Source: Thalia democratica (lineage: Eukaryota). From it: a stretch of DNA of 64,000 bases. Position numbers and translations under genes: made by a program. This document shows, piece by piece, positions 1 to 36,058 of this stretch. The stretch spans positions 23,808,001 to 23,872,000 of the forward strand of contig OZ241829.1 of NCBI GenBank assembly GCA_965202585.1. Direction: 5' to 3'. Under the pieces are notes generated by a model. It ran no database searches. It saw only the letters and a list, made by a program, of their open reading frames with translations, and was not told where the DNA came from. The first letter of the stretch is position 1. The number at the start of each line of letters is the position of its first letter.

Positions 1-3000
1 AGCCAGGTTAGTGTAAACGTTGTTTGATGTTTTTTTTTAAATTAAGAAAGCACGAACCTTTTATTTTATTTATTTAAAAACGGGTATGGTTTGTGGTTCG
101 ATAAACAAATTTAAAATTGTGTTATAAAATAGATTTATTTTGATATTTAAAATGTGCTCGTAGTTTGTTCGCTAATTACTTATTACCACTTAAAATTGAT
201 AATACAATGCAATTTTCAGTTTGATGTGATGGCAAATTTCATCGAAGAAACTTCAACTATTGGTGACGTCATAGTTATGGTAGTCAGAGGGGTTTCAAAA
301 CTTTATACTGCAAGTGACGATTCCGAAATCAAAACAACACTAAGAAAGATCGGACTCGCTTCATTTGCAGGATGTATTGATGAATCTTATGCAGGTTTCA
401 CATGTTCTATAATACCAATTTTATCGATATAAATATGTGTTCTTCCTTACAGTTATCATTTGAATTAGTTGGGGTTTTGATTACTTTAATATTTTCCCTT
501 TAAGCGATTAAAATTTAAATTACAATGATTGTAAATTATTTATTTAGTTAAATAATATTTTTCCATGATAACCGCTTGAAATATACAAATTATTCGATTA
601 TTGTGTTTATACCAGACATATTAAAAGAACTTGCTCACATACTTCTTCAAGTTTTAAATGTGTGTACAATTGATTGTATCAAACAGTTTAACCATACATC
701 AGTCATGGTTTTTATTTTTTAAGTTTTTTAAAAGATATTGTTTTTTATTTCATTAAACTATTAATTATGTTACTGGTTGTAGAGAGCTTACTGAAAAGTC
801 ACAGATGTGCTTTTAAAATTTAAAATATAACTGATCTATAGTTAATTGATTTAATTTAAAACGAGATGTTTGTTTTCAATATTTTTTTTCAACAGCTGAC
901 AGCACTTCTTGGGCAGTTTTAACTGGCAGGTTTCCAGAGCACGCTTCCGTTCCAAGCTGGGCCGAATGCAAAACGAGCACAGACGATTCGGTTGTGATTG
1001 ACAAGACGTTCAATTTCGATTGTTAGTTTTTTTGTTATCAATTTTTGCTTAACAGACCAAGCGCTCGTTTCGAACTAGCACTTGCAATTTCGTATTTGAA
1101 AAAGAAAGCAAGTATCATTGTTATTGATTGAAATCATTGTCAAATTTTGTCAAAGCTTCTGTAACATTAACTTTGTTTTTTTAACACGTTTTCTACCCGA
1201 ATTTGTAGTTTAAATATTTTTTGCGTTTTTCCTAACAGCTTGTAGCAAACCTTCGTCAGAACTGAAGAACGGAGCTTATACTAATTTAGAAACGGATGAA
1301 ATATACAATTACGGCGAAAGTTTGAACTTCACTTGCAACAAAAATTTAAATCCAGTCCCCTCAAATAACCAAATTGTTTGCACTTTGATGGGATGGGAAC
1401 ACGAAGCTGGCTGTTTTGAAAGTTTATTAAAATATTTTGTAGTTAAATAGTGTAATAGTGTACTTTAAAAGCTATACCAAGTTATGTTAACAGTTTAATA
1501 TTTTTTAAAAAATTTTTTTTTTACTTTCTGTCTTTAGTAGCTATTTAACTGATGTATAAGCAAAAAAGAAAAAAATTTGAGAATAATTATCAGTTGCATT
1601 GAGTTGTAATTAGGAATTTCCAAGAAGTTTAAAAAATTTTAAATGCTTAATAATTAAAACATAATTAGTAATCACACAAAGACCAAAACTGCCAAAATAA
1701 GTTCAGCCTATTTTGTATCGTTATAAATTTATTTGAACAAGAATCGCAGTTTGACAATCCGGTAAATGGTGAAACTTATTTACTGCATGAATTATAGAAT
1801 CTTTGACTTGAGAAGATTCATTTGCTAAATCTGATACACCACATATTTAATTACTTAATTATTGATAGAATTATAAGTTATATTATACTGATACATTATA
1901 AAGTAACAAAATTTATTTGAGTCACCAATTTTTGAAAATTATTTTGTCATAAAGCTTTCTGCTCGTATTTTTCAAAAATCAACTTTCTGCAATTCGTTTG
2001 TTATATTGAAATGTACATTTCCTGAAATTTAAAATTTTAAGAAATTTTTCATGTTTTTTTGCATTTTGTTGTATCGGATTTTACGATTAAATTATCGAAA
2101 AAGTGTTAATTTTTGTATAAATATAAAATACACTTAGAAACTTAGAAATACAATATTTAAGAAGGTGTTTAGTTATTGAGCATTTAATTTCTCCATGAGA
2201 AACTTTCATAAGAAATTTGTAAGAATTAAGTATTAAATAAGGAAAATTATAATTTAATTGATTTATTGTATATAAAAATAAATAGTTGTGATAATATCCT
2301 TAATAAAAGCTTATAAAGAGAATGTTTATTAATTATAAACGGTGACTTCACTTATTTACGCATTTGACCCAAAGAATAAATTATGAATATTTTTTTAGTT
2401 TTTTTGTAACTTCAACATCAGTGCCAAAAATTGACCTTTACTTATAGACCCTTGCCAACATTTAAATTAAAGTAAAGTATTTTGTATAAACAGTTTCTTT
2501 ATCAATCCAGATCACTAAATATATTTTAAATACTTCGCTTAACTTTGAGCGTTCAAATTAAAAAATGTTGGAAAACTTTACTGGAATTTGTTTTTGATAT
2601 GTTTTTTTGTGTTGTCAAAAATAACTGCATAAACGTTCTTCATTTTTTACTGAATTAATTTCTATAAGAATAGTTTTAACAGATATTTACCTAACAGTTA
2701 AATATATCTGAAATGATCACTTAGCTGTAGTCTTGAATTAATCTTTTTCCAAACTTTAAAATTATTATTTTTGTTTAGTATTATATTTATTTTCAAATGA
2801 TATTATATCAACCTAAAAATTTAATAGTAACGATTTTTTATTAGTTTTGATAAGTGAAACGGACTAGTTACTTTATTACTTTATGTACAAAATAAAGATG
2901 TTTCCTATAACTTAAAAGAAATCAAAACGGTTATGAATTTCTCAATTTAAAAAAAATAAAGTTATGTTATAAAGATTATAAATCTTAATCGAATTAATGA

Positions 3001-6000
3001 TAAGTTTGCATTCGTGATGTGTGACTAGAGTGATTTTTTTTTTAGTAAATATTTTTAGGCTCATACCATAGACACGCAATTTACCACAAATAGCTAAAGT
3101 CTTAATGTTTGATTTCAGCAAACAAATTTTGCAAAACAGCTAAATAAAATGTGAACGTCATTGAGTAGTATATCACAGTTATTGAATATGTGGGTTTGCC
3201 ACAAATCTGTCTTTATTTGATAGCACAGAAATAAATAAACATGTTTTCTTTCACTTTAAATAAAATCTAAAAAAGTTATATGTAGAAAAATGTTGCTAAA
3301 TTCATTGACCCGAACAAAATTATATTTTATTTTTTAGAAACTCTTTTAGTACCCTCATGTGTGTATTAATTACCCGATATATATTACACTTAACTTGATG
3401 CCAAGGTTTGGACTCGATTTTAAAAAGATAGTTTTCTTTTTTTTAATTTTCTGTTTGTTGCCGATTTTCAAATTAATAGATTATCATTTAAATTAATAAA
3501 GGAAGACGTATATTATTATAGTTTCCTTAACTAATTGACTAACTTATACAGATCTAGAGCGTATAATTCATTCATTACAGATTGTCCTGACGTTCCATCA
3601 TTTAATAACACACAATTATCACTGACCGACCATGCTCCTTATCATCGCGTAGCAAATTTCATGTGCGAAGTTGGTTTTTCGCTCTTTTTAGATGACGGGA
3701 GCAGCGCAGATTCGTTCCAACTTACTTGTAGCAAGAACGCAACATGGGTTGGTGTAGAAGGAAAATGTAGAAAAGGTGATGTAACATTTTTTTCTATTAA
3801 TCATGCTCTGTAGTATGTTGTGTAGAGTTAGTACTTATTACAACTGTTTAATTCTACCAGGCAATGCTTTTAAATTGTGCGTTCCTTTAAACTTTACTAG
3901 CGATATAACAAATTGTATTAAGTTAAGAGTATTTCGTCAAGTTTGCAAACAGGTAAATTAGTTTGAAAAAGCTTCGGTTTTTGTGCTGAATGCTTAGTTT
4001 TGAATGTTAATTTAAATTTATCAATTAATTCGTTGAAAATTTTATTATTTTTTGTAAAACAACAGTAAAAACATTATAAATTTTTTGTCGTTTTTATAAA
4101 AATCAAAGTAAAATATCTATGCAATTTGCTTGATTTTAAAAACTTTTATAAACTTTAAAATATCCTGTTTTTGTTTTTAAAAGTCATATGACCAAAGTTA
4201 AAAGTAAAGTTATTTTGAAAAGTCATTTTCACAAATAAAAGTTTTTCTTTAGATTATTTTGAAACTAACAAATAGTTAACTTGCTTTGAAGAAGTATATT
4301 CTATAAAATTAAAAGCCCTGCTTATTCCCTTACTTAATCTACTTGATCCAAAATCAGTATACAACTGTTTATAAAACACACTTTAATAGTTATTTTATAT
4401 GCATTTTTCGCAACAAACTAAAAGGATGTTGCTTGTATCAATTTAAGCTTTTAACTTTTTACGAAACGCGAGAAATCTGAATGAACATTTATAAGTGTTG
4501 TTTCTGAAAAGTCACTTTACCATACACTGTTATATTGCAGACTGCCCGGCTGCAATACCTGATGATAAGCTCGAGATTTACAACATTGAAATGGTAACGA
4601 AAACGGAAGCGAGTTACGACGAGGCACTGCAAGTTGAGTACGTGTGCAAAAGTAATTACGACAAGCTGTATTTGGGTGACTTTGTTTATAAGTGTCAGGA
4701 AGATGGTACGTGGAACAATAAAAATGTACTCCAGTGTCTTAACAGTCAGTTGCTTTTTCTTCTTTTTTTAGTTTTCAGCGTCTGCGCGGTTACTACTCCT
4801 CTAAGGATAAAATTTAGTTTTCAAGTTTTGATATTTTGTTCGCAATATAAAAGTTTTTTAGGTCTGTGATTTGATTGCCTTTTAATTGTAGTCAATTATT
4901 AAAATTATACCATTTTTAATAAAAGTACTCAACTCATAAATTTTTGTTTTGTGCTTTAACCAAATAGGTTTGCTTTCGAGATAGTTTAATATAGTTACAA
5001 ACTTATTCCTAAGTTATGAATAAAACACACTTTGAATGAATGCAATTTACTTTATTTTCAATAATAATTCTTAGTTCTGAAGAAAGAAACTATTAAATCA
5101 CGACACAAATAAAATCTATAAAAAGTATCAACAATCGTAAAGTTACATAAATACTAACATCAACTCCGCGATGTAGACGTTTTCTTGATTCTCGATAAAT
5201 TGAAGTAAAACGTTAAACTTAATCGTAACTAGATCATACCGCGGAATAACTTTGCAACTGACTTTAACGCGTATTTGAAAGACAAACGCCGATATATACG
5301 CGTCGGAATGAAATTAACTCCTTGAAATAATAAAAATGTTTGTTTTTTTATAAAAATATGTTTGTTTTTTTAATACTAGAAGCACGTCACAAATATCTGC
5401 ACAAAACACTCCACAACATTCGCTTTAAAATACGAAAATGAGATGTTAATATCATTACATTGTTTCTTTTTAAATTTTCAATTTTAACGTTTAAAGCCTG
5501 GTTTTAAATAATATAAATCTTTAAAATCCTACTTAACTTTAAACTTTTTTATAATTTTTAAAAAGGGGGGGGGGGGGTCAAAAAAAAAAAAAAAGTAAGA
5601 AAAAGAAACTGTATAACTTATTATCTCAAAAATTACATAATTTACAAAAATTAAGATAAGACACAACATAAGGACAAATTAAAAATGATAGTCATTTAGT
5701 TGGCTTCTGGCTTGTTGTCCTCAGGCTGCTTCTTTTACTGTGGTTTATTTAGCAGGAACGAACTCTTTTAATTCGCTTGTTCTTCTCCAAATTCAAAAAT
5801 TCATCGAATTCACTTGTTGACATAGAAAATATTCATCTTTTCATTGTCCATCATTGTAGTATCCATTTGAAAGAATTCATTCCAAAAAATACGCGGCTCA
5901 AAAAAAAAGTTCAGATATTCTTTCAAGAAAGTTTAGTAAAAACTACTATGTTATTATGCCAAAAGACAATAACGAAACTGTCAGAAACTTTCAAACCCAT

Positions 6001-9000
6001 TTTTTTATACAAAACAAAAATTAAGCATTTAAATATGCATTAAAAGAAAATTAATATTTTAAAACACATGAAACATTTTAATTTTGTTTTTAACTTAGAA
6101 AAACATATGTTCTTAATATTTAACTCGCAAACTTTAATAAACAAAACAGAAAACATTTTCTTTAAAGTATTTTACAAAACAATAAGTACTATTTTCATGC
6201 ACAAACTTTTATAGGATTCAAGTATAAAATATCTCAAAAAGCAACACGAGCAATTTCTAAGCATTATAGAAATTTTAAAGAGAAAAATTTAGCGAGTGCT
6301 TTTGTTCGATCATTAACAGTTAAAACTAAATGGGAGTTGAAAGTACTTTTAAATTCAAAATTTATAGGAAAAGTTTATCACGAGTCGAATTTTAAAGCTT
6401 TAAACTTGAACTTGATTATTTTACGAGCAAAAACTCTGGTAATTTAATTTTGTTTTAAATTTAGAGAAAAAAAGTAGTTACTAAAATTTTAATGCAAAAA
6501 ATAGGCGTATGAAACTTTTCTATATTATAATTGCTATTTGATAGCTTTTAATTAATAGTTTAATTACTAAACTGTAATTTATAATATAAAAAACTTCATA
6601 AATCATCATTAAAAGTAAAAAAGCTATAAACTTTACAATTCAGAAATTTTATCAGAAAAGAATACAAAATAAATACACGTAATAGTTTCTTTCATTTTAA
6701 CTTCTTAAAAAAATTACCTGAGTTTAGAAAATATTTAAATAGATTTTCATGTTAATAAAAAGTTACAACTTTTTACCTTTATTAAAGTCTGTTTCGTTAG
6801 TTTTGTGAAAATGTTTATATTTTATCTTCAAAATGCTTTAAGATAAATGTAAAAAGTTTTAGACCTGCTATTAGTAATTCTGACTCTTTTTTATTTTGTG
6901 TTATAATTTCTTTTTTGTCAAAGGAATTAAGTACTGCCAAATTGTTGTTCTCTTTAGCTAATATGTTGCTTGATACGCTAGTTTGTGATTTTGTTTTTGA
7001 AGAATTGTAATAGCCTGAGTCTTGTTTATAACTTTTAAGCTGCACTGTTGGCACTTGATATTTTGGCTTGCTATCATACTTTTTATTGTAACTGATATTT
7101 TTCTGCTGTTGTTTCTGATGTTTTTCTTTGATAAGTTTACCTTGTTTTGCTTTAAAAGCAAAAGCTTTCTTATAAGCTCTACTAGCTTTTATTTTCTGCT
7201 GTTGGAGGTTACGAGAATGATGGTTTGCGTTAAATATATTTTGTTGAAGTTTTTGATTGTAGTTTGAATTTTTATCTACAGCATACTTAGACCCTTGAAC
7301 TGTTTTACCATTAGGACCTGTCACGTTTGCGGCTTCTGACATGTTATTTTTACCTACAACAATATCAAACTGGACTTTTTCTCCTTGTGCAAGAGACCTT
7401 AAGAATTTGTTAGGGTTATTTTTGGCGATAGCTGTATAATGAACAAAAACATCGCTGTTCTGATCATCACGATGAATAAAACCGTAACCTTTGCGAACAT
7501 TAAACCATACTACTTGACCAGTTACTCTAATTGCTTTAGTGTTTTTGGTTACCTGAGCTTTTTCTTTGGTTGTTTGAAACTCTTTGCTTGTATTAGATGT
7601 TTTTGTAGGTAAGTGTTGATGACATGACAAACAGTGTGCTATGTTAACATTATTACTACTATTCCCATTGTATGATTTTCTTGGTTTAAAACTATCTCTA
7701 TCTTGGTTATGTTGACGATAATTGTAATTATGATTAATACCATTATCTCGGAAATGAAAATTTTGTTGATAATTAGGACGAACTCGCTTATGGTAATTTA
7801 TTTTAGACCTATGCTGACTTTGCTCATACTGCTGTAGTCTATTGTAATTAACTTGCTTAGGTACTAATGCGTTTTCTTTATAAGCATTCCATATGGCTTG
7901 TCCTTTTCTTTTAAAAAGTTCTAAGCTTTCATCAAAATGTTCCCTAATCTTATCTTTGATCGAAAAGGGCATTAAGTATGCAAGAAAAAACTTAATTCTG
8001 TCCTGTTCTCGACATTTGGCCCAACTTACGGCTGTAGCAAATATTTTATTAAAGTTTGTACACTCATTCCAAATTGGAATTTTATCTAAAATTTCAGCTA
8101 ACTGATTGTCCCTATTAATAAAAAAGTTTCTTAAAGAACTGTAATTTCTTTCACCTCGTTCTGTCATTTTATAATAGTCTGACAACTCTTCTCTCGGCCA
8201 AAACCCAGTTAGAAATTTATACTTTTCTGTATTACTAGAAATATTTTCATTTAACATTTCCTCCTTGAAAAAACTAATAATATCACGAGGGTTTCTTACA
8301 AAGTCTAACCTTTTAAACTTTTTACTTAGTCTTTGCGCCTTAAATGTGTCGCTAAAAATGTTTAAATTATTTTGATTACTTTTTTCGTAATCATCGTAAA
8401 AAGGTTCGCGTTTTTCTAGCATCGCACGTTCGTAATGTGGTGATCTAGACTGCTTTAATCTATTATTTAACTTTTTTATTTGCATTTGCAAAACTCTTAA
8501 CTCTTCTTCATTTGTTAGCTGCTTAACTTCGCTTGATTTTCTAAATTGTTGTTGAATGCTGTTTGACGGATAAAATTCAGCATTATCATTCATCATCTCT
8601 GCTTGATGAGAATTATTAAGATTGATATCGTCATTGTTGTTTGTGTGCATTTATTCTGTTTACTGCTTAAAGATTTGTAACCAGAAGATTCAAGGTTCTT
8701 AAAAGACACTGCGTGGTTTCCACTTTAACCAAATGGGTTATTTTAATGGTTTTTATGTTTTATGTCTTAACTACGTGGTCTCCAGTAACTTACTAACTGC
8801 TATACTTACGAGAAGTAAATAATATACTAACAGTATAAGTTACAAAACTATTTCCTAAGTTATGAATAAAACACACTTTGAATGAATGCAATTTACTTTA
8901 TTTTCAATAATAATTCTTAGTTCTGAAGAAAGAAACTATTAAATCACGACACAAATAAAATCTATAAAAAGTATCAACAATCGTAAAGTTACATAAATAC

Positions 9001-12000
9001 TAACATCAACTCCGCGATGTAGACGTTTTCTTGATTCTCGATAAATTGAAGTAAAACGTTAAACTTAATCGTAACTAGATCATACCGCGGAATAACTTTG
9101 CAACTGACTTTAACGCGTATTTGAAAGACAAACGCCGATATATACGCGTCGGAATGAAATTAACTCCTTGAAATAATAAAAATGTTTGTTTTTTTATAAA
9201 AATATGTTTGTTTTTTTAATACTAGAAGCACGTCACAAATATCTGCACAAAACACTCCACAACATTCGCTTTAAAATACGAAAATGAGATGTTAATATCA
9301 TTACAGTGCAAAAGGGAATAAATGATAGTTATAAGTACTAGCTTAGTTTTATCTACCTCTAAATTATTAGATTTATTCTATTCTAAAATTAAAAAATAAT
9401 TCATTTCAGTTAAGACTTATCTTAAACTTTTATTTATGTTTTTTGTAGATTTATACAGTTCAATTAGTTATAAATTATATAATTAGCTTATTGAAATACT
9501 ACGTTTAATAATAAAATTATTTAATAGAGATACTCGCATTTTAGATTAATTAATTGTTTTTTATGTCTTTATGTAAAATTTTAATCTATAAAATTAGTTT
9601 TTAGGTTATTATGACATTTTTTTACTAAGGTAGGTGATAACAATTGACTTTTAGTATGATGATTTTCTATTTACTGATATCGTAGCACTGAAAATTTAAA
9701 ATTAGTAAATTAGGTTCGAAATAACTAAGTATGATGGTTTTCAATGTGGAATTTTTATCATTAAAAGTAGTTACAACTCTATTATTTCGTTATCAAAAAT
9801 GCAAACAATTTAGATATTGTATGTGTTGAAAGACGTTTATACGTTTTTAGATACCATTCAATTGCAATCAAAATTACCTTTTTCATGTATTTAATTTAGT
9901 AAGCACTGTTTTAAAAATAGAACTAATTTTATTTTCAAATCAAATTAAATAAATACATACAAAACTATTTAATCAAACAAAAATATGGGCAAACTTAAGA
10001 AACAATTTATGAATTATGAATACTAATCAAACACCAAGTAAATACAGGGTTGTCACTCGGTCAGGAAAAGTCAGGAAATTAGGAAAAGTCAGGAAAACTT
10101 TAAAAAAATGACAAAAGTCAGGAAAAAATGGGGGGTTTTGAAAAAAAGTCAGGAAATTTGATAAAATTAAAAAAAAAAGTCAGATTTTGTCAGTTTAAAT
10201 TTACAAAATTCCTTGTTTTCCAAAGCCTTCAAATGGTAATATTTAATTAAAAGTCTATTAAAGTCAGAAAAAATTCCAAAATTTCCTAGAAATTTACAAA
10301 AATATTTAATTTAATTTCCAATGCCTTCATCTGGTATAAATTAGTAAAACATATTTAATAAAACTGCAAAAATTTTCAATTAACATATTGAACAAGTACC
10401 CTACTTGAACAAGCAGATTTTGTAAGCTTTTTAATATTGATGATCTGTAGCAAGAACACTTCCATAGTGAAACTGTGGTATATACATAAAATTTTATCTA
10501 GCATAATTTTAGAACCAAAGTTCTTTTTAACTAAGCAGTTACTTACATGTCGTTTGTTTATCTAGATACATTTATGCTAGGAAATGCTAAAAAATTGTGT
10601 CTTTTTTCAGACAAGCTGTTTTTATAAGTTATAATACAAGTATTTTGCTGATGGAGCTGTTTATTACAAACATCAATCATACACAGTTGGTTCAAGTAAT
10701 GTACTGGAAGTTTGATGATAGAATTCAGCAAAAAACTGTTGTTTTTAACCTGTATTAAAATTAGATTGAAAGCTTTATATAGTTTCAATTGTTAGATTAT
10801 GTACTTTAGAATAAGTTTAATTTAAGTTTTTGATTTAGAAAAGTCAGGAAAATTTTTGTAAAAAGTCAGGAAAAGTCAGGAAATTTTTCTCAGCTTGATC
10901 AATGGCAACTATGTAAATAGTAGTTAGAACAAAAAAGATTTAAAAAAATAGTAATTGACTATATAAAGACATTTTGCGGAATCCGAGATCCTTTATAAGA
11001 TGCTGGTTAAAAATTAACATTCGGTTTATTTTATTTAATCATTATTGCTGATAAACTGCTGCGTTTTAAGTAGGCCAATGATTTGACATATCGATGTTTT
11101 TTAAATTTTTTATTTAAAGTTAATAGGTAGAAAGCCAAGACCCTAGCGCATATAAGGCTTCAAAACAAATTTTAAAATTCGGTTTACAATGGTAGTTGGC
11201 GCGAGACCGTTTGAAGAGTTTTAGGAAAGATTATATAATGATATATTAAATAATTTATATTAAACCGCCAAAGCGAAAATCTTTAAAAAGAACTTCTACT
11301 TCAAAGTATTTAATTAATATTCCATAACTTAAAAAAGGTGTTTAAATGTTATGTTTAATAAGTAGTTTAATCACATATTTCTGACTTTTTTTTATCGTTT
11401 ATTTAAAAAATTGATAAAATAAGATATTTTGGGGAGAAACCAAAGATGCATATATATTTATTTCTATAAGCCTTAGACTTAAAACGTTTTAATAAAATTA
11501 TAAAAATTGTATTAACTCAATTTCAAAGCTGTAACTACTGTTTACTTTCAGATTGCTTTCAGTTCATCACGTCTGGTACATTTGAGGTCTTTGGAGACGC
11601 TAAAAGCTATTGTGAAGGTAATAGTGGACGTTTGCTAGAGCAAAGTATGAAGCTAAGGTGGAAAAACTATCACGAGTAAGTTGCTTAAAAGAAATTCAAA
11701 TTTTTTAATTATAAATCCTTTTTTTTCAATGTGGACCTGGGCATCAAAAGTTTAGCAACTTAAACAGTATACATAAACATAATTTTTATAAAATAAACAA
11801 ATGTATAATTTTTAAAGCAAATTGTTTTTAAACTTTGGTCACTTTTGCATTAAAACTTGAAAATAAAGGAAACTTGTATCTAAGCTTAGTATATAAAATA
11901 GCATAATATTTTAAAATAGGTAAATATTTATATGAACTGCACTAAAAACTTTGACAAACCCAGTTAATTGCTCAGTTGTAAAAAGTAATTGATTTTTTGA

Positions 12001-15000
12001 ACCAAGTACGAAATTATTGTAACATTTGAACGAGCTTGTTTAGTTTGGATCTCTTTTATCAAATTTGGTAGATACTTTGAAACTTTATAAACACAGTTAT
12101 GGAAGTTTCTACCTCAGGTTGTAAAATACATAGACAGTTAATAAAAAAAAGTTCTGTATAGAAAATATAATCATTAAGATTTAATAAAACATCAGGAATA
12201 GTTAATTAAGATAAAGTTTTCCTAATTAGGTTATTTTCGTATTTACTTTTTTGGGTACCTATCGAATTTTATTGATAAATATTTTACCTAGATTTTTTAT
12301 TTTTTAATTTCAGTCGAAAATGTTGTCCTCCGACGCAAAACTGTCGAATAAATAATATAAAACAAATAAATTTTAATAAGTATATACCAACTTTAAATTG
12401 CTGTTTTTCTATTTTACCTTTTAAATTAATTAAAGATTGTAAGTTACTTTATTGATTTTGTATGTCTGCTCGGGGGGCCCGGTAGCCCCGATGGAACAGA
12501 TACTGCCTTTGGGTCACTTGAGATCATCTTAATATACTCTTACAAGATAACAATATTAGAGTATTAGACAATATTAGAATATCAAATATTAGAATATGAA
12601 TATTATTAATGGATATCAATAACAATAACAAATAATAATAATAATAATAATATAAATTTTTAATAGAATCTAATAATTGTAAATAATTATTTATAAATAC
12701 AGAAAACTTAAACTACCACTAACATACTAATTAAATCACTAATACATTATAAACAACTATGAAATCAATTTTATTTAACAAATTAGAAATGTAAACAAAT
12801 CAGGAGAAAATTACAGCATTTACAAGTTCAATAGCAGTCAACAAAATGTTATACTAAGTTCTCTGAAGCCCTATCATGTCACTCTCCAAACATAAAACCT
12901 GTCTTCAAAAACAAAAAATTCTATTAATTATTACGTCATATGTTTTGATTTTAGCATTCTTAGAAATATATAACTATTTTGTACTTTTTCGAATTTGAAT
13001 TCCAATACAACGTTACATGTTAATTCGAACAACGAAAACATCGGCGAAAGTCTACAGAGCCTAAGCCTGGACTGTCGTATGCCGTAAGACAAGCTCAAGT
13101 TTAACATAAGCTTTGATCATACCAATTCGATCATCACACCACAAGCCTTCGGTAGACTGAGACCGGTTTCGTCCTTATTAGGACTCATCAGTCTGATGAC
13201 TGCAAGCTTTTTCATTGTGACTGACTGATGAGTTTTAATAAGGACGAAACCGGTTTCAGTCTACCATATAACAATGTAGTCGTGAATTTAGCATTAACTT
13301 TTACTCACAACTTAATTTATATCATACTTGTAATTTTAATGATTTTTTTCTCGTTATTTGTGTAGTACAAACTTTTTCAGTTAAAAATAAGTAGCGGCCC
13401 GAATAAATTTGCTCAGTAGTATAAGTTGCAGTTCCGATAACTCCGGCACTGCTCTTTCGGGTAAACTAAAGTTTAATTGCATACTATTTCAAAAAGATTG
13501 ACGCTAATTTTTCACAGTAAAATAGAAAACAGCCTAGAAGATTTCATCAGGGAGTGCTGGACCGGTATAAGAGACTCAGAAACCGAAGGAGTCTTCAAGT
13601 TTGTGTCAGACAACTCAATAGCGTACGAGGCAAATAAAGATTCGAGAATTAAGGATTACGGTGAGACGCCGACAACAGAAGAAGATGTGAAGTATACGTG
13701 GTCATCTGGTGAGCCCAACCACGCTATTCCTCCTGAAGACTACGTAACCCTCTCAAAACAACAAAAGTTTATCGACCAAACCTCTACGTTGATGTTCTCT
13801 GTGCTCTGTGAAATACCAACACCGGAATGTCATGAAAGTACTAATTTTGTTATTTACATAATAAAACTAAATTTCTTTTTTTGTATGTGTAGAATTTTTT
13901 TAACACTTGATATGTTTGTATTAATTTTTGTTTCTGTATGTAAAACAATTGATAAAAAATAGATGTAAGATGTCCAGCAATACCTAATGCATCTTACAAT
14001 TTCGAAGAGAGATATTTAGGAGATCAACTTGTACGGGGCGTCCAATTAAATTACGTTTGTAATGAAGGATTTGTACGTATTTCTGAAAGCAACTCTACTA
14101 CATGCACTGTAGATGGGTGGTCAGAAAACGCAGAATGCGTTAAAAGTAAGCATAAAACAATAAACAAAAAATATTTGAACTAAAACTATTGCTTTATTAG
14201 AGTTTTTTGTAAAAGTTTTAAGCGTTTTTAATTCGTATAATCTATAGCCTATAGATAAACACAAGCATGTTTCAACACTTTTTAAATTGTGTTAAAACTT
14301 TTTGCTTTTAAACAACAATTTTATTAAGTTTGTCCTCCCCAACCAACCCCGGACAATTTCAATGTGAAAATCGTAGAACTAGACTTTACTGACGACACCA
14401 TGACTAGATACGCTTGCGATGATTCAAATTACCAGTTTTTGTACTTTATTCATCTAAACATCACTAAGTGATGAGTATATTTCAAGTTAAAAATCATTAA
14501 TTAAGTTAAGGTTTTTAGTTTCACCAACATAAAAAGCATAACTACGAAATAAACCACATAAATATAACGACCAAATAAAAGCTTAAGTTGTATAAATTAA
14601 AACCTTCGTTACTAAAATTGTACCTTGACCAAAATGCTTAATAAGTTGGTTTCTTATTGAGTTATTTTTAACTAACAAACAACTCACAGGGAAATACGAG
14701 TTCAGAATAACGAATACAACGGGTACGTTTAACCAGGCTCGGGAGCAATGTATAGAAATGGGTGGAGACCTAATATTTGAAAACTTGGGACCCGGCGGGA
14801 AAATATATCACCCGTAAGTTGTATTTTAAATATATATATATATATATGTATATAAAACAAAACAGCATTTCGTTCGACAACTTGATCATGACTTGAATTA
14901 GTGTGAAAATACTTTTTTACGGTAAAAAATATTTCTTTTTTACCAGCTTAAAAAATCTCGATCAATTATGTGTGTTTCACTAACACATAATAAGAATATA

Positions 15001-15491
15001 ATAAACAAATTAAGTTTTGATTTAGTTAACAAAATAACAACAACAAAAATTTTTTGAGTAAAATCGGACGTACACAACTTTGCATATAAAAATAAACCAC
15101 TGACAACTGACATGCTTAATTTTTACTTGATCTCCTTTCCTGAAAAAAATCACAGTGGATTTGTTTTAACTGTATTAACGCGTAAATCTCAAAGTAAAAA
15201 ATAAACAGAGAAATCAGGGATTTGATCGAGGACAATCCAGCGTGGATCGGCCTGACCGACGAAGTAGTTGAGGGTGAGTGGCGAAAACCGGGATCTAATG
15301 AGGTTTTCGACACTAGAAATGCTGGAAACTTGTTCTCGTGGGCCCCAGATGAGCCAAATAACGGTCAAAACAATAAACAGCACTGTGTATATGTCGGTTG
15401 GATGGGCCCATTTAATATGGACGACCACGAATGCTCGTTAGAAGCACACATATTTTTTGGTCTTTGCGAGATAAAACTGCCCGAAGATTAA
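1..15491 (+). CDS. Copy A: multi-exon gene (5'-partial) for an ILEI/PANDER-like + CCP/sushi + C-type lectin mosaic protein; visible part ILEI(part)-CCP-CCP-CCP-CTL-CCP-CTL, about 640 aa
   Basis: AG/GT-bounded exons join in phase without stops: 1-6, 220-394, 896-1021, 1239-1421, 3581-3775, 4541-4744, 11552-11675, 13518-13837, 13963-14145, 14690-14813, 15209-15491 (TAA). Exon lengths match copy B except the last. No transcript evidence. Confidence 0.85.
220..394 (+). CDS. Copy A exon, ILEI/PANDER-like domain middle
   Basis: [24 protein letters not shown]...IKTTLRKIG; ttttcag acceptor, gcag|gtttca donor; phase 0 to 1. Confidence 0.8.
896..1021 (+). CDS. Copy A exon, ILEI/PANDER-like domain end
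   Basis: [25 protein letters not shown]; SWA..G matches the ILEI SWAFIG motif; aacag acceptor, gttagt donor. Confidence 0.8.
1239..1421 (+). CDS. Copy A exon, CCP/sushi domain
   Basis: CSKPSS...FTCNK...[14 protein letters not shown]: four Cys plus Trp; phase 1-1. Confidence 0.85.
3581..3775 (+). CDS. Copy A exon, CCP/sushi domain
   Basis: CPDVPS...FMCEVGF...[16 protein letters not shown]; phase 1-1. Confidence 0.85.
4541..4744 (+). CDS. Copy A exon, CCP/sushi domain
   Basis: CPAAIP...YVCKSNY...[17 protein letters not shown]; phase 1-1. Confidence 0.85.
4955..9305 (-). mobile_element. Non-autonomous LTR retroelement (4351 bp), gag-like ORF fused to a cold-shock domain, no pol
   Basis: Direct terminal repeats 4955-5459 and 8724-9305, identical over about 453 bp; element-sense ends TGTAA...TTAAA; 4-bp TSD GTGC (4951-4954, 9306-9309); empty site with a single GTGC in copy B near 41070; purine tract AAAAAGAAACAA before the 3' LTR. 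Confidence 0.85.
6815..8650 (-). CDS. 611-aa Gag-like protein with a Y-box-type cold-shock domain (CSD at about 7270-7535)
   Basis: Intronless open ORF between LTRs. The [42 protein letters not shown]...EAANVTGP...VQGSKYA matches the YB-1 family including Y-box-specific segments. The N-terminal coiled coil and helical region resemble Gypsy-type capsid (inference, by eye). Confidence 0.85.
10045..10913. mobile_element. MITE with CAGGGTTG-type TIRs, AGTCAGGAA subterminal repeats, TAAATA TSD
   Basis: CAGGGTTGTCAC...TGGCAACTATG; TAAATA on both sides; absent from copy B, which has a single TAAATA near 40335. Confidence 0.75.
11552..11675 (+). CDS. Copy A exon, C-type lectin domain 1, N-terminal half
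   Basis: [29 protein letters not shown]; tttcag acceptor, gtaag donor; phase 1-2. Confidence 0.8.
12455..12910 (-). repeat. Probable 3' end of a non-LTR retroelement
   Basis: GC-richer tail ending at an AATAAA-rich tract, (AAT)n inside; shared with copy B (about 38340-38800). No recognisable ORF, so class assignment is weak. Confidence 0.3.
13155..13197 (-). ncRNA. Minimal type I hammerhead ribozyme, stem I partly mismatched
   Basis: CUGAUGA-GUCC uaauaa GGAC-GAAA-CCGG-UC-UCAGUC; the 5' stem I strand is AUCAGA instead of GACUGA. Confidence 0.7.
13219..13261 (+). ncRNA. Minimal type I hammerhead ribozyme
   Basis: GACUGA CUGAUGA GUUU uaauaa GGAC GAAA CCGG UU UCAGUC: 6-bp stem I, stem II with G.U pairs, palindromic ACCGGU stem III. 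Confidence 0.8.
13518..13837 (+). CDS. Copy A exon, C-type lectin domain 1, C-terminal half
   Basis: CWTGIRD...EGVFKF...WSSGEPN...LCE; phase 2-1. Confidence 0.85.
13963..14145 (+). CDS. Copy A exon, CCP/sushi domain
   Basis: RCPAIPNA...YVCNEGF...[13 protein letters not shown]; gtaag donor; phase 1-1. Confidence 0.85.
14329..14471 (+). pseudogene. Half-CCP exon ending in TGA TGA (pseudoexon or alternative last exon)
   Basis: attaag|tt tgt cct acceptor; [11 protein letters not shown]...RYACDD has only 2 of 4 CCP Cys, then stop; the same 143-nt structure is in copy B at 36806-36948. Confidence 0.55.
14690..14813 (+). CDS. Copy A exon, terminal C-type lectin, N-terminal half
   Basis: [27 protein letters not shown]; cacag acceptor, gtaag donor; phase 1-2. 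Confidence 0.8.
15209..15491 (+). CDS. Copy A last exon, terminal C-type lectin with EPN motif
   Basis: [14 protein letters not shown]...WAPDEPNN...HCV...MDDHEC...LCE, TAA stop. Confidence 0.9.
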
Positions 15492-15596
15492 AAAGAAATT
15501 TGAGCTGTGCGAAGTAGAACAGCGCTTGAAGGTGTTGTTGTTTTGTATTTATTTTATGAGTTCCTGTTTTTAAATTATTTTATTTTTCTTCGTTTT

Positions 15597-15602
15597 AATA
15601 AA
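15597..15602 (+). terminator. Candidate poly(A) signal of copy A
   Basis: AATAAA about 105 nt after the stop, conserved in copy B (35611-35616, minus); AATAAA is common in AT-rich DNA. Confidence 0.4.
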
Positions 15603-16319
15603 ACTTTGTACTTTTTTCATTTAGATTTTATAGCTCTGTATTTTTTTTTAGTTTTTAAAGTTTAGTTTAAACCTTGTTAGATATATATCATTAAAATGCT
15701 GTAGTAAAACATTTTTTCATCTTTAAATCACCTAATAAGTCATCGTAACACTGTAGAATATTTTAGTATAGTCTAAAATAATATATAAGGTTATTTATTG
15801 CATTTGTTTAAAGTTTAAAAATAAAAGCTATATGCATGTTTTTCTGCTGTACAGTGAAAATAAAACTTTATTTCACGTTATTGTTTCAGATATTTTGGTT
15901 GTTTTATCCCGTAAGATACACTTGCGAACAAACAGCTTTACTGTGCCTAAATATTTCCTTAAAAAAAGACTTTTTAACATAAGTCTGCTTGAAACAGTTA
16001 TCTCAGCTAACTCAGTAGGGAATACTTTATTTTATGTCAAATCATAAACATCTATAACTATGTTTTATTTTTTTTTTTACAATTCAAAATATTAATCTAA
16101 AGAGTAACTAGATAGAAAATGCTGCAATCTAGACTAAACTACTGTTATTGTAACCAAACAAATCAACTTTCGAACAAAAAAAGTTTCGAGTATTAAATGA
16201 CAAATACAGTGCTTATTCACTTATCCGGACACGTTGGGCAAGATTTTTCTGTAGACATTTCCGGATAACCAAAGTTCTAAATAAATACAAAAAATCAATT
16301 TTTTATTTAATAATAAAAA

Positions 16320-17030
16320 TAAAAACAAATTATACAGTAATCTTCCTTTATTCTACCAACATATGTTTCTGTGTGTCAACGAATCAACACACTTCAACTG
16401 GGTTCTGTAAAAAAATAATTACTGTAATGAGAGAATAGAAGCATAGAATAAAGTAGGTGTATACATGTTTTCATTAAAATAAGATATTTTCTACAGATAA
16501 TAGTTATTAATAGGTGAAATACTTTATATTAAATCCGACTGTTATAAAACTATATGATATTTGTAATTATTAAGTCTAAAATAAATAAGCTAAATTACAA
16601 AACATAATATAAAAAAACAACTCACGTTAATAGGAAAGATAACTAAATCAAAATTTACTGTTGTTAAATAACGAAAAAAATACATTCGTTACAACTAATA
16701 ATTACGTCACAATGTAAATAAGGTTATTTAAACTATTTAATTTGTATTGTAAACAACATTAATTTTGTTTTTATGTAATCTATTTTGAACAAAAATAAAA
16801 CATTAACCATTAGTTAGTAAATCAATAAAATTTAATAAAACTTAACGACGCTGAAGGCAATAAAAGTCACAGAAACTCGGTGTAACATGTATATTATATA
16901 TTGAATGTTAATAATGATTGAATCAAAGTTATATAGAATTAGGAAGCAGATTTAGTTCAAATGTAAAAATCAAAAAGTGAAAAAATTAAACTTTAAGGAA
17001 AAACAAAACACAAAAAACATAATTATAAAC
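16320..17030. repeat. Dispersed AT-rich repeat, direct copy at about 42725-43440
   Basis: Collinear similarity starting at aaaaacaaatt(a/g)tacagtaatcttcctttatt; boundaries approximate. Confidence 0.7.
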
Positions 17031-26600: not shown

Positions 26601-26769
26601 CCTTGAAAAAGTAAATATTTTAAAATTAAGCTCTTATATATTAAGCTTTTTATTTCATACAGTTTTATAACTTATGTAAAGCTTGAATGTATTAAGCAGG
26701 TAAAATAAAAATATTATTTTTTACTATTTAGATAGACGCCAGCCATCTCTTATGTGAAATACGGGAGCC

Positions 26770-27227
26770 GATCATTTCTAACCCGCTATCATTTCTAACC
26801 CATTCACTTCTAACCCGATCACTTCTAACCCGATCACTTCTAACCCGATCATTTCTAACCCGATCACTTCTAACCCGATGACTTCTAACCCGATCATTTC
26901 TAACCCAATCATTTCTAACCCAATCACTTCTAACTCGATCACTCTAACCCGATCACTTCTAACCCGATCACTTCTAACCCGATCACTTCTAACCCGATTT
27001 AACCCATTCATTTCTAACCCGATCATTTCTAACCCGATCACTTCTAACCCGATCATTTCTAACAAGATCATTTCTAACCCGATCACTTCTAACCCGATCA
27101 TTTCTAACCCGATTTAACCCATTCATTTCTAACCCGATCATTTCTAACCCAATCATTTCTAACCCATTCATTTCTAACCCGATCACTTCCAACCCGATCA
27201 TTTCTGACCCGATCGTTTCCAACCCAT
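26770..27227 (+). repeat. 15-bp tandem array (left arm)
   Basis: About 30 units of ccgatca(c/t)ttctaac; source of the spurious MIGLE/SNPII ORFs. Confidence 0.95.
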
Positions 27228-29625
27228 TCTACTTGTTTATTTTACTTTAATCTGGATTTCATGCAAAAAGAAACTATTCCTAACTAAGTTATTAATTTTT
27301 TTTTTAGTTTGTTTATAACATTATGATTTTCATGTGTTACGTAGAGTACATTGTTAGTTTAAATTTTAATTTTAGTATTAACTTAACATAAGTTTAATTT
27401 ATTTTTATTACCTCGTTTTTTCAATCCTACACATAATTTCAATTTTTTTTATTTTTTTTTTCTTTCAATCTTTTTTAACGGACGTTTTTCGTTAATCATA
27501 TACAATTGACTAAATAGTTAACTTTAAAATATTTTAAATTATTCTTTGTAGGATTATAAAGTAAACAGTTATAATTATGTTTAAGTTGGATCTTATAGTA
27601 ATTCACGTCACTATAATAGTTTTAACATAAGCAAATTTTAAAAAGTAAACATTTACCATTGTAATATTTAGATACAAAAACCTTTATTACGGTCTAAAAA
27701 CTACATTGTAAGTCTGTTGTAAATGTTGTATTATTGCTGACTAATGTATTTACGTTTTATAGTAGGCTAGTTTTAAGTTTCATTTTAATAACTTTTACAA
27801 ATTTTATACAACTTGCATAGGCCTATTAAGATAGTGGAATTTAAACAAACACTAGGAGAAATTAAATACTTTTGTTATATTAAGTAGAAAAGCATGATTT
27901 TTAGGTATAACCTAGATAATAGTTATGTCATATAACAAACCGCAAAAGTATATTACGTCGATTGACCGTCTTGATTTCACATCATTAATAAATTTCTACT
28001 TAGTCCTAGAGCAAATAAAAGTAACTTATAACTACACAGACATGTCTATTTATATAACAATTCCGAGGTTAATCAAATCTCGCCTAGGTAATCTTCTTTA
28101 AAAACTTCACGTAATCTATATAATATACAAACTATTTCAATTACGACTTAAATTAGTACTTTAGTTGACAAATAATTCTTTAAAATTTACTTTAGTTTGA
28201 ACAGTTGCAATAACGTAAGTAAAAACGAAATAAGTACTGAAAAACATTTTGAAATAGAATAAAAAATCAATTATTGTTAATTTAAGTATAACTAACAGCA
28301 GAAGTTTATAAAAATTCTTTCAAGTTCTTTTTTCCTTTAGTCAACTAAAACTAAAGACGATTATTACACGCAACATATTTACTTTTTATTCATTACAGTA
28401 AAGCCAGCTTGAAGACTATTGACTTTATTCTCGGTGTCTTTTGCACCTCTAAATTTCTATAAATGTAATGAGTTTTTTCTTTAGTAGAAATTTAAATCTA
28501 TAGCAGAGTTTCACAATACCAACTAATTTTATTATTTTATTATAAGTGTTTAAGTTATGTAAGTTAATCAAATAACTTAAACTTATATTTCAAATTTAAT
28601 TATCACTAAATAATCTTAGGATTTTGTGGTTTTGGAAACCTGTGAAACAATAACTTTTAAAAGATATCAAGAAATCTTTTTTAAGAAGTTTTTACTTTTA
28701 ATTGTGAGAAATTCTTTTTGCAATTTTAAATTTTGAAAACTTTTAAATTTTCATGGTAAAATTAAATTTATTTTGCTCTATATACAATATTTTTTGAAAA
28801 AAAAGTTAAATAATAAGTTTTCGAAACTCAACTTTTATAGTTAAGTTTATTGTATAATATATCTTATAATCTTTAAATATAATTTACCATTGGCTAAAAG
28901 AAAGAAAATTAAATTTTAGTTCTAGTAAATGACAGGATCTAGATATTAAAAAAAAACGTCTACCTCTAGTTTTGACTTATTAAACAATGTACACTTTCGT
29001 TTTAAGAACATAGAATTAGATAATGGTAATTTAAATAAAACCACCATACTAATTAAGATAAATAAATTTTATTAATTGTATTATTTCAAGTTTCATATAT
29101 ACTAATATAAATTTTCTTAAAAAGTTGTAATTCATATAAATTTGCCCTAAATTCAAATTCAACTTGCCAATCTGGTCTCCATACTTGAAAAATATATATT
29201 AACCATATAGAAAATCTTCAAAGAAAAAGTACGGTATGTATTTAACGGCTGCAATACTCATTATATATCTCACATTGACAACTATCAAAACTTAATATTT
29301 AATCTTTAGAATTCAAAAGACTTATACTTTTCCTAATGCTTTTTAAAACTAATTAAATACAATTAATTAATAATCCATTTTTGAACCTTTTTAGAATAAT
29401 TAATTACCACAAAAAAAAATCAAAAAATTCATGCAGTCATGGTTATCTTTCAGTTTAAATGTTGAATTAGCTTTCAAAGAAAACTAATCTTTGTAAAAAA
29501 ATTAAACAACTTTGATTTAAGTTTACTTGATTAAGATTAGATACTTTATATTAGAAACTATAAGTAACTTCACAAGTTTTAAACTTATAGACCATTGATT
29601 AAATATGTAGAATTCGGTTCATTAT

Positions 29626-31862: not shown

Positions 31863-32772
31863 TACCGAAACTTGTGGTCTGATGATCGAATTGGCATGAT
31901 CAATCCTTTTGTTAATTTCAATAATGTTTATTTTAATTGTATCGATTATGCTTTGGCATAGCGAAAAAAATAATTGATGAAAAACAATGAAATACCAAAC
32001 GGTTGCACAAATGTACATAACCTAACTCTAAAAGTCAGGATGTGTATATCCAGTTGATGTTTGAACAAGATAAATTTTGTTCATGAACTTTGGAGTTTGT
32101 TTAAATTCTGACATTCTAGTATGTTCTAAATAAATTTTATAAAAGTAACCATGAATCTTATTTTAATGAAGAAGTGCGTGATTCAGACTGTTTTGCTGAT
32201 TGCTGCACTAAATCATTGAAATATTTTACTAAATCGTCTAAATATGTGTTGCTGAGTTTTTAAGAGAAGGTTTTTTTTGTTGAAAAGAAATCGGAACTTA
32301 ATTCTAAATTGAAATATTGTGCAGCTGTGTTTGGTTTTATTGGAACTAACTGATCGATGAAAGAATTGATGTCAAACTTGCTTATTATGAAGTTAAAACC
32401 AAATTTGTTAAAAACCTTCTCCTTCAAATCATAAATAAGTCAATTAGTATTATAATAAATTGTTGATTTCTTTTGCTGTTAATCTATAAATGTTTGATAA
32501 AACTGAAGTTTTTAATTTTAAGCTAAATAAACTTTCGTCTCTTTGTTAAGTGTCATTCAGTTTAAGTGGCCCAGATTTTGGTGCCTGGGTCTAGCGTAGG
32601 ATAACAAACTTCCAATAGCAAAAATAATGTTTTAACAAAAGCTATCTGAACATTAAGTCTTATTTTAAACAAAACAAACTAATTTCATTAAAAAAACAAC
32701 TTTATTGAGATTAGTTTGTTTCCAAAACAAACCCTTATTTTAAAACAATAATAAACAAACATACTAATACAG

Positions 32773-33115
32773 ATCGGGTTAATAGTTGTCGGGTTAGTTC
32801 GGGTTAAAAATGATCGGGTTAGAAGTGATCTTGTTAGAAATGATCTTGTTATAAATGATCGGGTTAGAAGTGATTGGGTTAGAAATGATCGGGTTAGAAA
32901 TGATTGGGTTATAAATGATCGGGTTAGAAGTGATCGGGTTAGAAGTGATCGGGTTAGAAGTAATCGAGTTAGAAGTGATCGGGTTAGAAGTGATCGGGTT
33001 AAAAGTGGTCGGGTTAGAAATGATTGGGCTAGAAATGATCTGGTTAGAAATTATTTGGTTAGAAGTGATCGGTTAGAAATGATCGGGTTAGATATGATAG
33101 CAAGTTAGAAATGGT
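32773..33115 (-). repeat. 15-bp tandem array (right arm)
   Basis: gatcgggttagaa(g/a)t units, reverse complement of the left array. Confidence 0.95.
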
Positions 33116-34620: not shown

Positions 34621-35721
34621 TTCGTTAAGTTAATTTAGTTCAATTTCAAAAATGTAGTTTGAATACTTATTTCAACCACTAAAAAAAATTAAGTTACTAT
34701 TTTACAAATAAATATAAATTAGTTTTACCCTACTTCATCTTTTGAAATAAAAATGTTTAGTTTCTATCATTATGCGGTGCCTAACTTACTTTATTTAGGT
34801 AACCTTAAAATATACAACTATTATTATTAATTCTATTCTTATGAAGCATAATTTAAGCTTAAAGAGATATATCAGAAAAAAAAAATATTACAAGTATTAA
34901 ATAAAAGGTTGGTATTATATACTGTAAGCTAAATTAAGTGAACGTAGTCTACCGCGGACCGTTTACTGTTTTAATAAAAATAGAAATTGTTTTAAAAAAC
35001 AATCAAGTACTACTGAAATAATTTAAAAGCCAATTAGCTTCTACCACTTTTATTTACTTTATTTTTTATTACCTATTACTTTTATTATCTACCACTACCT
35101 AAATACTTTATTTATTTAGGTTGTTTCAATTAGAAAATGAGTCCAAGGCCTCGTATTTACGTTTGCTTTAGGAGTATAAATACAATAAAGGAGTGCCTCA
35201 TCGAGTAATTTTTAAATGTTTAGTATTAACTAGTTTTAAATATGAAATAATTAAAAACTATTTAGCCACAGTAAAGCTGTTTTGTTCGCAAGTGTATCTT
35301 ACAGCATAAAACAACTAAAATATCTGAAACAATAACGTGAAATAAAGTTTTATTTTCACTGTACAGCAGAAAAACATGCATATAGATTTTACTTTTAGAT
35401 TTTAAACAAATGCAATAAATAACCTTATAAAATATTTCAGACTACACTAAAATATACTACAGTGTTACGATGACTTATTAGGTAGTTTAAAGATAAAAAA
35501 ATGTTTTACTACAGCATTTTAATGATATATATCTAACAAGGTTTAAACTAAACTTTAAAAACTAAAAAAAAATACACAGCTATAAAATCTAAATGAAATA
35601 AGTACAAAGTTTTATTAAAACGAACAAAAATATAATAACTTAAAAACAGGAACTCATAAAATAAATACAAAACAACAACACCTACAAGCGCTGCTCTACT
35701 TCGCACAGCTCAAATTTCATT

Positions 35722-36058
35722 TTAATCTTCGGGCAGTTTTATCTCGCAAAGACCCAACTTGTCGCCTGAGTAAAAAGATGAGCAAGTTCCAACCGGAACA
35801 TCGGCGCAGCAGTTGGTGTCGTCCATACCCAGTGGGCTCTTCCAACCAACATATACACAGTCCTGGTCAATTTCGGTGTTCCCATTAACACGGCCGTTAT
35901 TGGGTTCAGGCGGTATCCACGAGAACAAGTTTCCAGCCTTTCTAGTGTTGAAAACCTCATCTGTAGCTGAAGATCCCGGTTTTCGCCACTCACCCTCAAC
36001 TACTTCGTCGGTCAGGCCGATCCACGCTGGATTGTCCTCGATCAAATCCCTGATTTCT
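35722..36058 (-). CDS. Copy B last exon, terminal C-type lectin (EPN), 54 nt longer than in copy A
   Basis: AWIGLTD...WIPPEPNNGRVNGNTEIDQDCV...MDDTNCC...GTC...LCE, TAA. Confidence 0.9.

Follow-up and report, generated by a model that had tools for sequence, protein, structure and literature searches.

Old loop-core types on a shared backbone in two inverted C-type lectin genes of Thalia democratica

The window analyzed here is a stretch of 64,000 nucleotides (nt) from the genome of Thalia democratica (GenBank assembly GCA_965202585.1, contig OZ241829.1, positions 23,808,001–23,872,000 of the forward strand). It is gap-free, has a GC content of 28% and contains an inverted duplication. On each arm lies one gene that encodes Sushi repeats (PF00084), a lectin-like domain in the middle and a C-type lectin domain at the end; the two genes, A on the plus strand and B on the minus strand, are convergent and face each other. 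A and B are most likely a young inverted duplicate pair. We found that within their last exons the core around the predicted Ca2+/sugar site has a different ancestry from the sequence flanking it. The core borders are sharp, both core types are conserved, and the short type carried by A is native to the locus. The difference between A and B was very probably produced by the exchange of a block between old types, through some form of recombination, and not by mutation in place.

Self-BLAST within the window paired arm A (1–15956, plus strand, carrying gene A) with arm B (minus strand) from 46791 down to 35255. Arm B occupies 35255–52672 and holds, besides gene B, the 3′ part of the next paralog. 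The last exon encodes the second half of the terminal lectin domain and lies at 15209–15491 (+) in A, with its TAA stop codon at 15489–15491, and at 35722–36058 (−) in B. The first 88 nt of the exon and the 53 nt of intron preceding it are 100% identical between A and B. The last 33 nt of the exon are also identical, and the next ~470 nt, comprising the 3′ untranslated region (UTR) and flank, are 95% identical. An AATAAA motif common to A and B (15597–15602 in A) is a candidate polyadenylation signal. The alignment thereby confirms an initial annotation of this stretch, which had described a divergent segment enclosed by a near-identical exon start, exon end, intron and 3′ UTR. Its account of the segment was also accurate: the last exon of B is 54 nt (18 amino acids) longer as a result of four in-frame indels (9, 15, 12 and 18 nt), both frames are open, B has two extra cysteines and the translations are correct.

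The divergent part of the exon has two components. The first is a segment with the 9-nt in-frame indel (Ser-Ala-Thr), which is present in B (35962–35970, −) and missing from A (15296/15297); the 45 nt that follow it contain only three A–B substitutions. The second is a hyperdivergent core. In A (15342–15458, +) it consists of 39 codons of the short type, running from after GNLFSW to before GLCEI, with sharp borders at 15341/15342 and 15458/15459. In B (35755–35916, −) it consists of 54 codons of the long, or L, type, with an EPN loop extended by five residues and a Cys-rich insertion of 10 residues (13 relative to the shortest types). Over the 39 aligned codons the two cores are 62% identical, with 45 nt of in-frame indels. 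The core holds the EPN loop, strand β3, the MDD motif and the β4–β5 loop, in keeping with the earlier claim that the change is focused on the region of the Ca2+/sugar site. Comparable divergence was not seen through the rest of the arms. Sliding windows of 200 nt over the aligned arm segments (3321–15956) gave A–B identities of 87–100%, falling to 74% only at the core. Other mismatch-rich windows (near 12067 and near −1138) were non-coding indel or low-complexity stretches. A control, the lectin-like exon of a neighboring paralog that is duplicated in the same palindrome (51146–51535, −), showed 0 differences in 390 nt between the arms.

Synonymous sites distinguish the age of the core from that of its surroundings. 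Between core A and core B, 13.2 of 22.7 synonymous sites differ (proportion of synonymous differences, pS, 0.58; synonymous divergence, dS, 1.1), as do 31.8 of 94.3 non-synonymous sites. In the other recognizable coding sequence of the pair (440 codons), the corresponding figures are 6.0 of 273.5 (pS 0.022) and 22.0 of 1046.5. Core and remaining coding sequence differ at synonymous (Fisher p = 1.5e-12) and non-synonymous (p = 1.8e-23) sites. In so young a pair, selection acting on new mutations could not have saturated the synonymous sites; the two cores must therefore be of separate, old ancestry. The core had originally been described as rewritten between the copies; as a recent in-place change from A to B this does not hold, since synonymous sites are saturated in the core and almost unchanged in the flanks.

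Phylogenetic analysis gave conflicting trees for core and flank. In the tree of the 5′ flank (450 nt of intron and exon start), A and B are sisters (support 98/97). In the core tree, B falls within the L clade (100/99) and A lies among the short types. Approximately unbiased (AU) tests rejected grouping A with B in the core (p = 0.009). They also rejected B with L in the framework (p = 0.008–0.011) and in flank plus framework (p = 0.00016), and A with S1, one of the short types, in flank plus framework (p = 7e-6). A further comparison comes from P1 and P2, two full-length paralogs with L cores. At sites that differ between A and B along the arms, P1/P2 side with A 113 times and with B 114 times, and these sites are unclustered (z = −1.3). 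Within the patch 15297–15458, they side with B at 31 sites and with A at 10. Throughout the family, frameworks cluster by genomic neighborhood and cores by type.

Genome searches with both last exons and with the core alone revealed at least four loop types, L, S1, S2 and S3. The L type combines the longer EPN loop with the insertion NCC.DVP.GTC.SFY.GDK. Besides B, it was found in seven exons: at 18.315, 18.323 and 18.331 Mb of C5, at 61.346 and 61.356 Mb of C2, at 55.31 Mb of C4 and on contig C1574. S1 occurs at C5:18.347 Mb and C2:61.338 Mb, and S3 at C5:6.09–6.13 Mb and 33.30 Mb. S2 is a second last-exon unit placed ~1.1 kb after the L unit at the same loci as L. The distant metagenomic relatives P0009 and P0010 keep the CC...C insertion. 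Judged from these alignments, the two extra cysteines of B are an old, conserved family feature and not a novelty of B. The insertion may contain a disulfide, but the initial proposal of a new disulfide loop in B is contradicted by the conservation of its pattern in seven other exons and of CC...C in the distant relatives.

The same searches supplied relatives for each core. Core B is 86–87% identical in nucleotides (dS 0.19–0.23) to the L cores of P1 and P2 (C5:18.31–18.33 Mb and C2:61.35 Mb), and the A/B backbone is about equally far from P1/P2 (88–90%). For core A, the nearest sequences in the genome are the S1 modules (73–74% nucleotide identity, with a dS of 0.23 that equals the framework dS of 0.23); a marine metagenomic lineage, O, is 69–71% identical. 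The best assembly match to core A reached 82% in a BLAST match of 146 nt, part of which is conserved flank (73–74% over the core codons). No donor of at least 95% identity was found for either core in the assembly, and a word-index search of metagenome proteins, which returned only exon-sized fragments, gave no core closer than those of the assembly. For core B, the best match elsewhere in the assembly stays at 86–87%.

Lineage O was used to establish which core is native. It was recovered, by the word-index protein search, as exon-sized fragments from Tara and other marine metagenomes in the European Nucleotide Archive (ENA). The species itself occurs in such samples, as other fragments from these metagenomes match paralogs of this genome at 99% identity. 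Four O contigs (L061, L063, L064 and L065) are 96–99.7% identical to one another and collinear with A, which is their nearest relative in this genome (4–8% divergence). Their flanks are 92–96% identical to both A and B, and site patterns in the backbone were AB|OP at 41 sites, AO|BP at 1 and BO|AP at 4. The three longer ones among these four run past the arm's end and reach a repeat junction at ~16207, a flank that is lacking beside B. This flank past the arm (15957–16315, +) is common to L061, L063 and L065 at 92.5–93% identity and is unalignable to the sequence beside B. The segment 15900–16207 also occurs downstream of S3 paralogs. The repeat at 16207 is present at the same site in the metagenome contigs orthologous to A. 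Side by side with this, we note that 16207–16320, at the outer junction of A, is a short dispersed repeat with many copies of ~90% identity on all large contigs.

The O core is of the short type, with dS of 0.18 and non-synonymous divergence (dN) of 0.42–0.45 from core A. A's junction is unique, and the contigs that have it too carry a short core related to A's; the short core is therefore native to the locus. Given ((A,B),O) and the short core of O, parsimony also places it in the common ancestor of A and B. The reverse assignment, with A's core as the imported one, had been suggested by the smooth B–P1 identity across the patch; the native short core of the O contigs reversed it.

We infer the direction of the exchange and its molecular mechanism from this pattern. 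In the account that we favor, to which we give about half of our confidence, an L-type core was imported into B by ectopic gene conversion after the duplication. Non-reciprocal homologous recombination would have copied the L core into B in a tract of at most ~216 nt, leaving the last exon as a three-part mosaic of shared framework, core, and shared framework with 3′ UTR. The tract would end in the codons of GNLFSW and GLCEIK, which are nucleotide-invariant across the family. Third codon positions of the framework, including those of these border motifs, are at least 90% invariant family-wide, against 50–60% in the core. Ectopic conversion tracts are commonly of such a size (160–216 nt). The outcome would be one stalk with two different binding heads. 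Within the short type, the faster accumulation of replacements and in-frame indels in the core than in the framework would be due to diversifying selection.

Several observations weigh against this account. The nearest L donor, at 86–87% identity (dS ~0.2), is too far away for a copy made after a duplication with a dS of 0.02. Because no closer L copy was found, a lost, unassembled or allelic "ghost" donor must be assumed. Identity between the arms varies widely, from 89% to 98.6%, as repeated arm-to-arm conversion would give. In the 3′ flank, A and B do not stand together against O, all three being ~5% apart, so that the two flanks of the core may differ in history. The groups compared in the AU tests were defined after the types had been seen, and alignment within the core is uncertain.

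Several of these points bear on the strongest competing explanation, which we consider possible but less probable than import. It holds that A and B are an old head-to-head pair of a short-type and an L-type gene, that repeated conversion within the palindrome has homogenized the arms to 93–99% identity, and that the cores have escaped. Escape could have occurred because 38% mismatch and indels block heteroduplex formation, or because selection removes conversions that erase a type. Each core is about as old as the separation of the A/B backbone from the rest of the family, given the dS of ~0.2 between B and L cores and the dS of 0.23 between A and S1 cores, which equals that of the framework; under this explanation a ghost donor becomes unnecessary. 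Mismatches per 500 nt range from 0.2% to 11% along the arms and are over-dispersed (p = 2e-27). Identity is 100% over ~140 nt up to the 5′ border at 15296/15297, and the 5′ and 3′ flanks relate differently to lineage O. Clustering of frameworks by neighborhood and of cores by type is what concerted evolution of the framework would produce. However, no residual island was found outside the core in which B sides with L-type paralogs (the 113 and 114 unclustered sites described above), and at least two conversion tracts would need to end exactly at the core borders. The search of metagenome proteins yielded no ortholog of B's type, whereas A's locus was met four times, which is a weak point given the patchy sampling.

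A different origin of the mosaic, which we regard as unlikely, starts from an ancestral tandem of last-exon units, L followed by short; after the duplication, unequal crossing-over between them would have deleted L from A and the short one from B. Such tandems do exist. P1, P2 and the repeated modules carry an L unit and, ~1.1 kb later, an S2 unit with homologous flanks, while other modules of the same array carry S2 only or S1 only. A mosaic of exactly this kind would follow from crossing-over within the shared flanks, which would also consume the donor. The O contigs, however, have a short unit only and are collinear from the previous exons onward, so that L would have been lost three times independently. 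In addition, the S2 unit of P1/P2 is no ortholog of A's core (dS ~1.1), and A–B identity right up to the core forces the crossover to lie at the border.

The arrays themselves were examined at C5:18,290,001–18,350,000 and C2:61,325,001–61,365,000. At both, a unit of 8.1 kb is repeated ~4–5 times with 94–97% identity behind one full-length paralog. It comprises the terminal 1.7 kb of the gene, with a Sushi-like exon, the first half of the lectin domain and the last exons, as well as ~5 kb with an open frame of 279 amino acids. A unit has L and S2, S2 only or S1 only as its last exons; the repeats of the C5 array contain three L, four S2 and one S1. The cluster on C2 mirrors that on C5, and one S2 exon there (C2:61,345,044) has an internal stop.

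It is also conceivable, but in our view improbable, that the family forms a true cassette system. GNLFSW and GLCEIK would then be joints dedicated to recombination, with the C5:18.3 Mb and C2:61.35 Mb arrays as donor libraries, and cores would be moved often between stalk genes, in the germline or even somatically as in chicken immunoglobulin conversion. The exchange and the invariant joints are all that the present locus contributes to this idea; it shows no sign of somatic change, of a template repeat or of a reverse transcriptase behind the exchange. If true, it would give a planktonic tunicate a variable receptor repertoire based on lectins.

An artefact is very unlikely, whether as two haplotypes of a single locus that the assembler set next to each other as A and B or as a local mis-assembly of the patch. 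The 4% arm divergence does resemble that between A and the wild contigs (4–8%), but the window is free of gaps, a unique, transposon-rich spacer of 19 kb separates the inverted arms, and B's outer flank is unrelated to A's. A also contains a long terminal repeat (LTR) element and an 860-nt insertion that B is without, and a chimeric patch of 160–216 nt would be far below read length. Finally, rewriting in place after duplication, by positive selection on point mutations and small indels in one copy, is close to refuted: the in-frame indels, the two open frames, the rapid amino acid change of the core in other comparisons and a whole-pair dN/dS of ~1 would suit it, but not the contrast in pS (0.58 in the core and 0.022 elsewhere, p = 1.5e-12) or the full-length match of B's core, insertions included, to seven other L exons.

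Amino acid change within the short type follows a different pattern from the A–B difference. Between A and O, the proportion of non-synonymous differences (pN) is 0.33 in the core and 0.085 in the framework (p = 6e-6), and pS does not differ significantly (p = 0.35). For the A and S1 cores, dN is 0.37 and dS 0.23. Core dN/dS is ~1.6–2.4 for A compared with the O contigs and with the S1 paralogs. As a caution against the selective part of our account, this excess over 1 rests on three to four synonymous differences (one-sided Fisher p = 0.07). Differences and in-frame indels among the O contigs are concentrated in this last exon. L061 differs from L063 and L065 at 3.7–4.4% of positions in the exon and at 0.7–1.35% outside it (p = 0.005 and 8e-6); L063 and L065 show no exon excess, in a set of three to four contigs that could represent more than one species. 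These data suggest diversifying selection on the short-type core, with replacements and in-frame indels accumulating several times faster than in the framework. The initial annotation had left the choice between selection and patch conversion from other paralogs. Conversion fits the A–B comparison, with its saturated core and tree conflict; selection finds some support, and only in A against O and S1.

The 9-nt indel is polymorphic among the O contigs, being present in L061 (Ser-Ala-Ser) and absent from L063 and L065. A 6-nt indel (Leu-Glu) also occurs among them and is shared with A and S1. Both recur in other members of the family, which hints at micro-conversion or at recurrent indels at fixed points.

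Each exon of the terminal lectin domain was searched on its own. In Pfam, the last exon of A matched Lectin_C (PF00059) with 23.6 bits, above the cut-off of 22.6; that of B, a half domain with insertions, scored 17.1 bits, below it. The nearest solved relative of A's last exon is the carbohydrate-recognition domain of langerin (E = 2e-4), and none was found for B's at E ≤ 0.01. The exon for the first half of the domain lies in A within an open frame at 14629–14813 (+). It is followed by the donor GTAAGT from 14814, and its counterpart in B is at 36464–36648. The WIGL motif is present in the family as AWIGLTD. Cysteines before β3, after MDD and in GLCEI were found in all 24 family exons examined, and the preceding exon supplies a putative partner cysteine (REQCIEMGG). 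Putative N-terminal exons gave no match in the Pfam search. The middle lectin-like exon (13519–13836 in A, 37748–37431 in B) shows eight non-synonymous differences and one synonymous difference. Over all non-core exons of A and B, dN (0.021) and dS (0.022) are about equal, with no sign of purifying selection.

Of the motifs of the sugar site, EPN is kept by A, by B and by the L, S1 and O types, and some S3 members have EPS instead. All family members have MDD in place of WND (MND in one S1) and Gln in place of the Glu that lies two residues ahead of the β3 cysteine (Thr in one S1). In the alignment with langerin, EPNNAGNN-EHC...WND stands opposite a segment of 12 residues (letters not shown) that leads to MDD. 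The changes from WND to MDD and from Glu to Gln keep oxygen ligands. Ca2+-dependent sugar binding by the A and B heads is therefore plausible on sequence grounds, and the two heads may bind different ligands. The sequence by itself reveals no specificity, and the mannose/GlcNAc type of binding that the initial annotation linked to EPN is a candidate activity.

The palindrome extends beyond the window. Arm A continues for at least 10 kb to the left, the length that was fetched (L062), which makes the arm length of at least 26 kb a lower bound. In this region, L062:1–2570 is 98.6% identical to window positions 52672–50104, but the adjoining block, L062:6694–10000, is only 92.7% identical to 50087–46792; a 4.1-kb insertion in the left arm separates the two. 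The step in identity suggests either recent arm-to-arm conversion or duplication in two stages. Over the arms as a whole, substitution differences average 4.1%, with an index of dispersion of 6.7. The LTR element (4955–9305) lies in an intron of gene A and has two 472-nt LTRs of 99.2% identity; because it is missing from arm B, it arrived after the duplication. The ~860-nt insertion (10044–10908) is likewise found in arm A only. The spacer between the arms (~19 kb) is unique and rich in repeats and transposons. It contains two tandem repeat arrays with a 15-nt period (26768–27228 and 32772–33113), inverted relative to each other.

No description of this lectin family, or of salp lectins, was found in the literature, but parts of the pattern are familiar from other gene families. 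In the peptide-binding exons of the major histocompatibility complex (MHC), patchwork (interlocus) gene conversion acts alongside long-lived lineages of binding sites. As there, ligand-contact blocks at the present locus are far older than the surrounding intron and exon, also at synonymous sites, and have sharp borders; motifs are shared in mosaic fashion among loci or alleles, and polymorphism is concentrated in the same exon. Unlike the MHC, the fold here is that of C-type lectins, exchange is between paralogs of a palindrome, and our view of the population consists of four metagenome contigs. Venom families such as phospholipase A2 and conotoxins evolve at an accelerated rate. The same has been described for venom gene families that include C-type lectin-like proteins, with conservation of their non-coding parts (PMC6062510). 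The salp genes resemble them in that introns and UTRs are more conserved than the coding sequence of the interaction surface, with dN at or above dS for A against O and S1. The venom families, however, change by point substitution, whereas A and B differ by exchange, with saturated synonymous sites and a match to a pre-existing type.

Concerted evolution has been reported for the C-type-lectin-like receptors NKG2/CD94 of natural killer (NK) cells (PMC2195720). They too are a multigene family with a lectin fold in which conversion-like events on discrete parts of the gene were deduced from synonymous frequencies (PMC2195720). In NKG2, it is the lectin domain that is homogenized and the other end of the gene that diverges; in A and B, stalk and framework are homogenized and the core is distinct. 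Diversification by cassettes is known from pseudo-V conversion in chicken immunoglobulins, from the variable lymphocyte receptors of lampreys and from the C-type-lectin-fold proteins of phage diversity-generating retroelements. The salp lectins share with these systems a constant scaffold and a variable binding segment between conserved joints, on a lectin fold that tolerates massive variation. Those systems are somatic or based on retroelements, whereas the exchange described here is germline and evolutionary. The locus also differs from the tandem spare last exons that lie behind one gene at C5:18.3 Mb, as it consists of two complete convergent genes with a single last exon each.

The A/B pair provides a clean natural experiment, in which the same Sushi and lectin stalk (~2% difference) bears wholly different cores and an outgroup locus from the open ocean indicates which of them is native. 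The mechanism that we favor for this single locus is one already known from gene families of the immune type. For the family, our results show that lectin diversity in this tunicate lineage is built from a few old, conserved loop types, redistributed as blocks, together with fast amino acid change within types. MHC-like and NK-receptor families follow the same logic; here it operates on a C-type lectin scaffold, in an animal that has no adaptive immunity.

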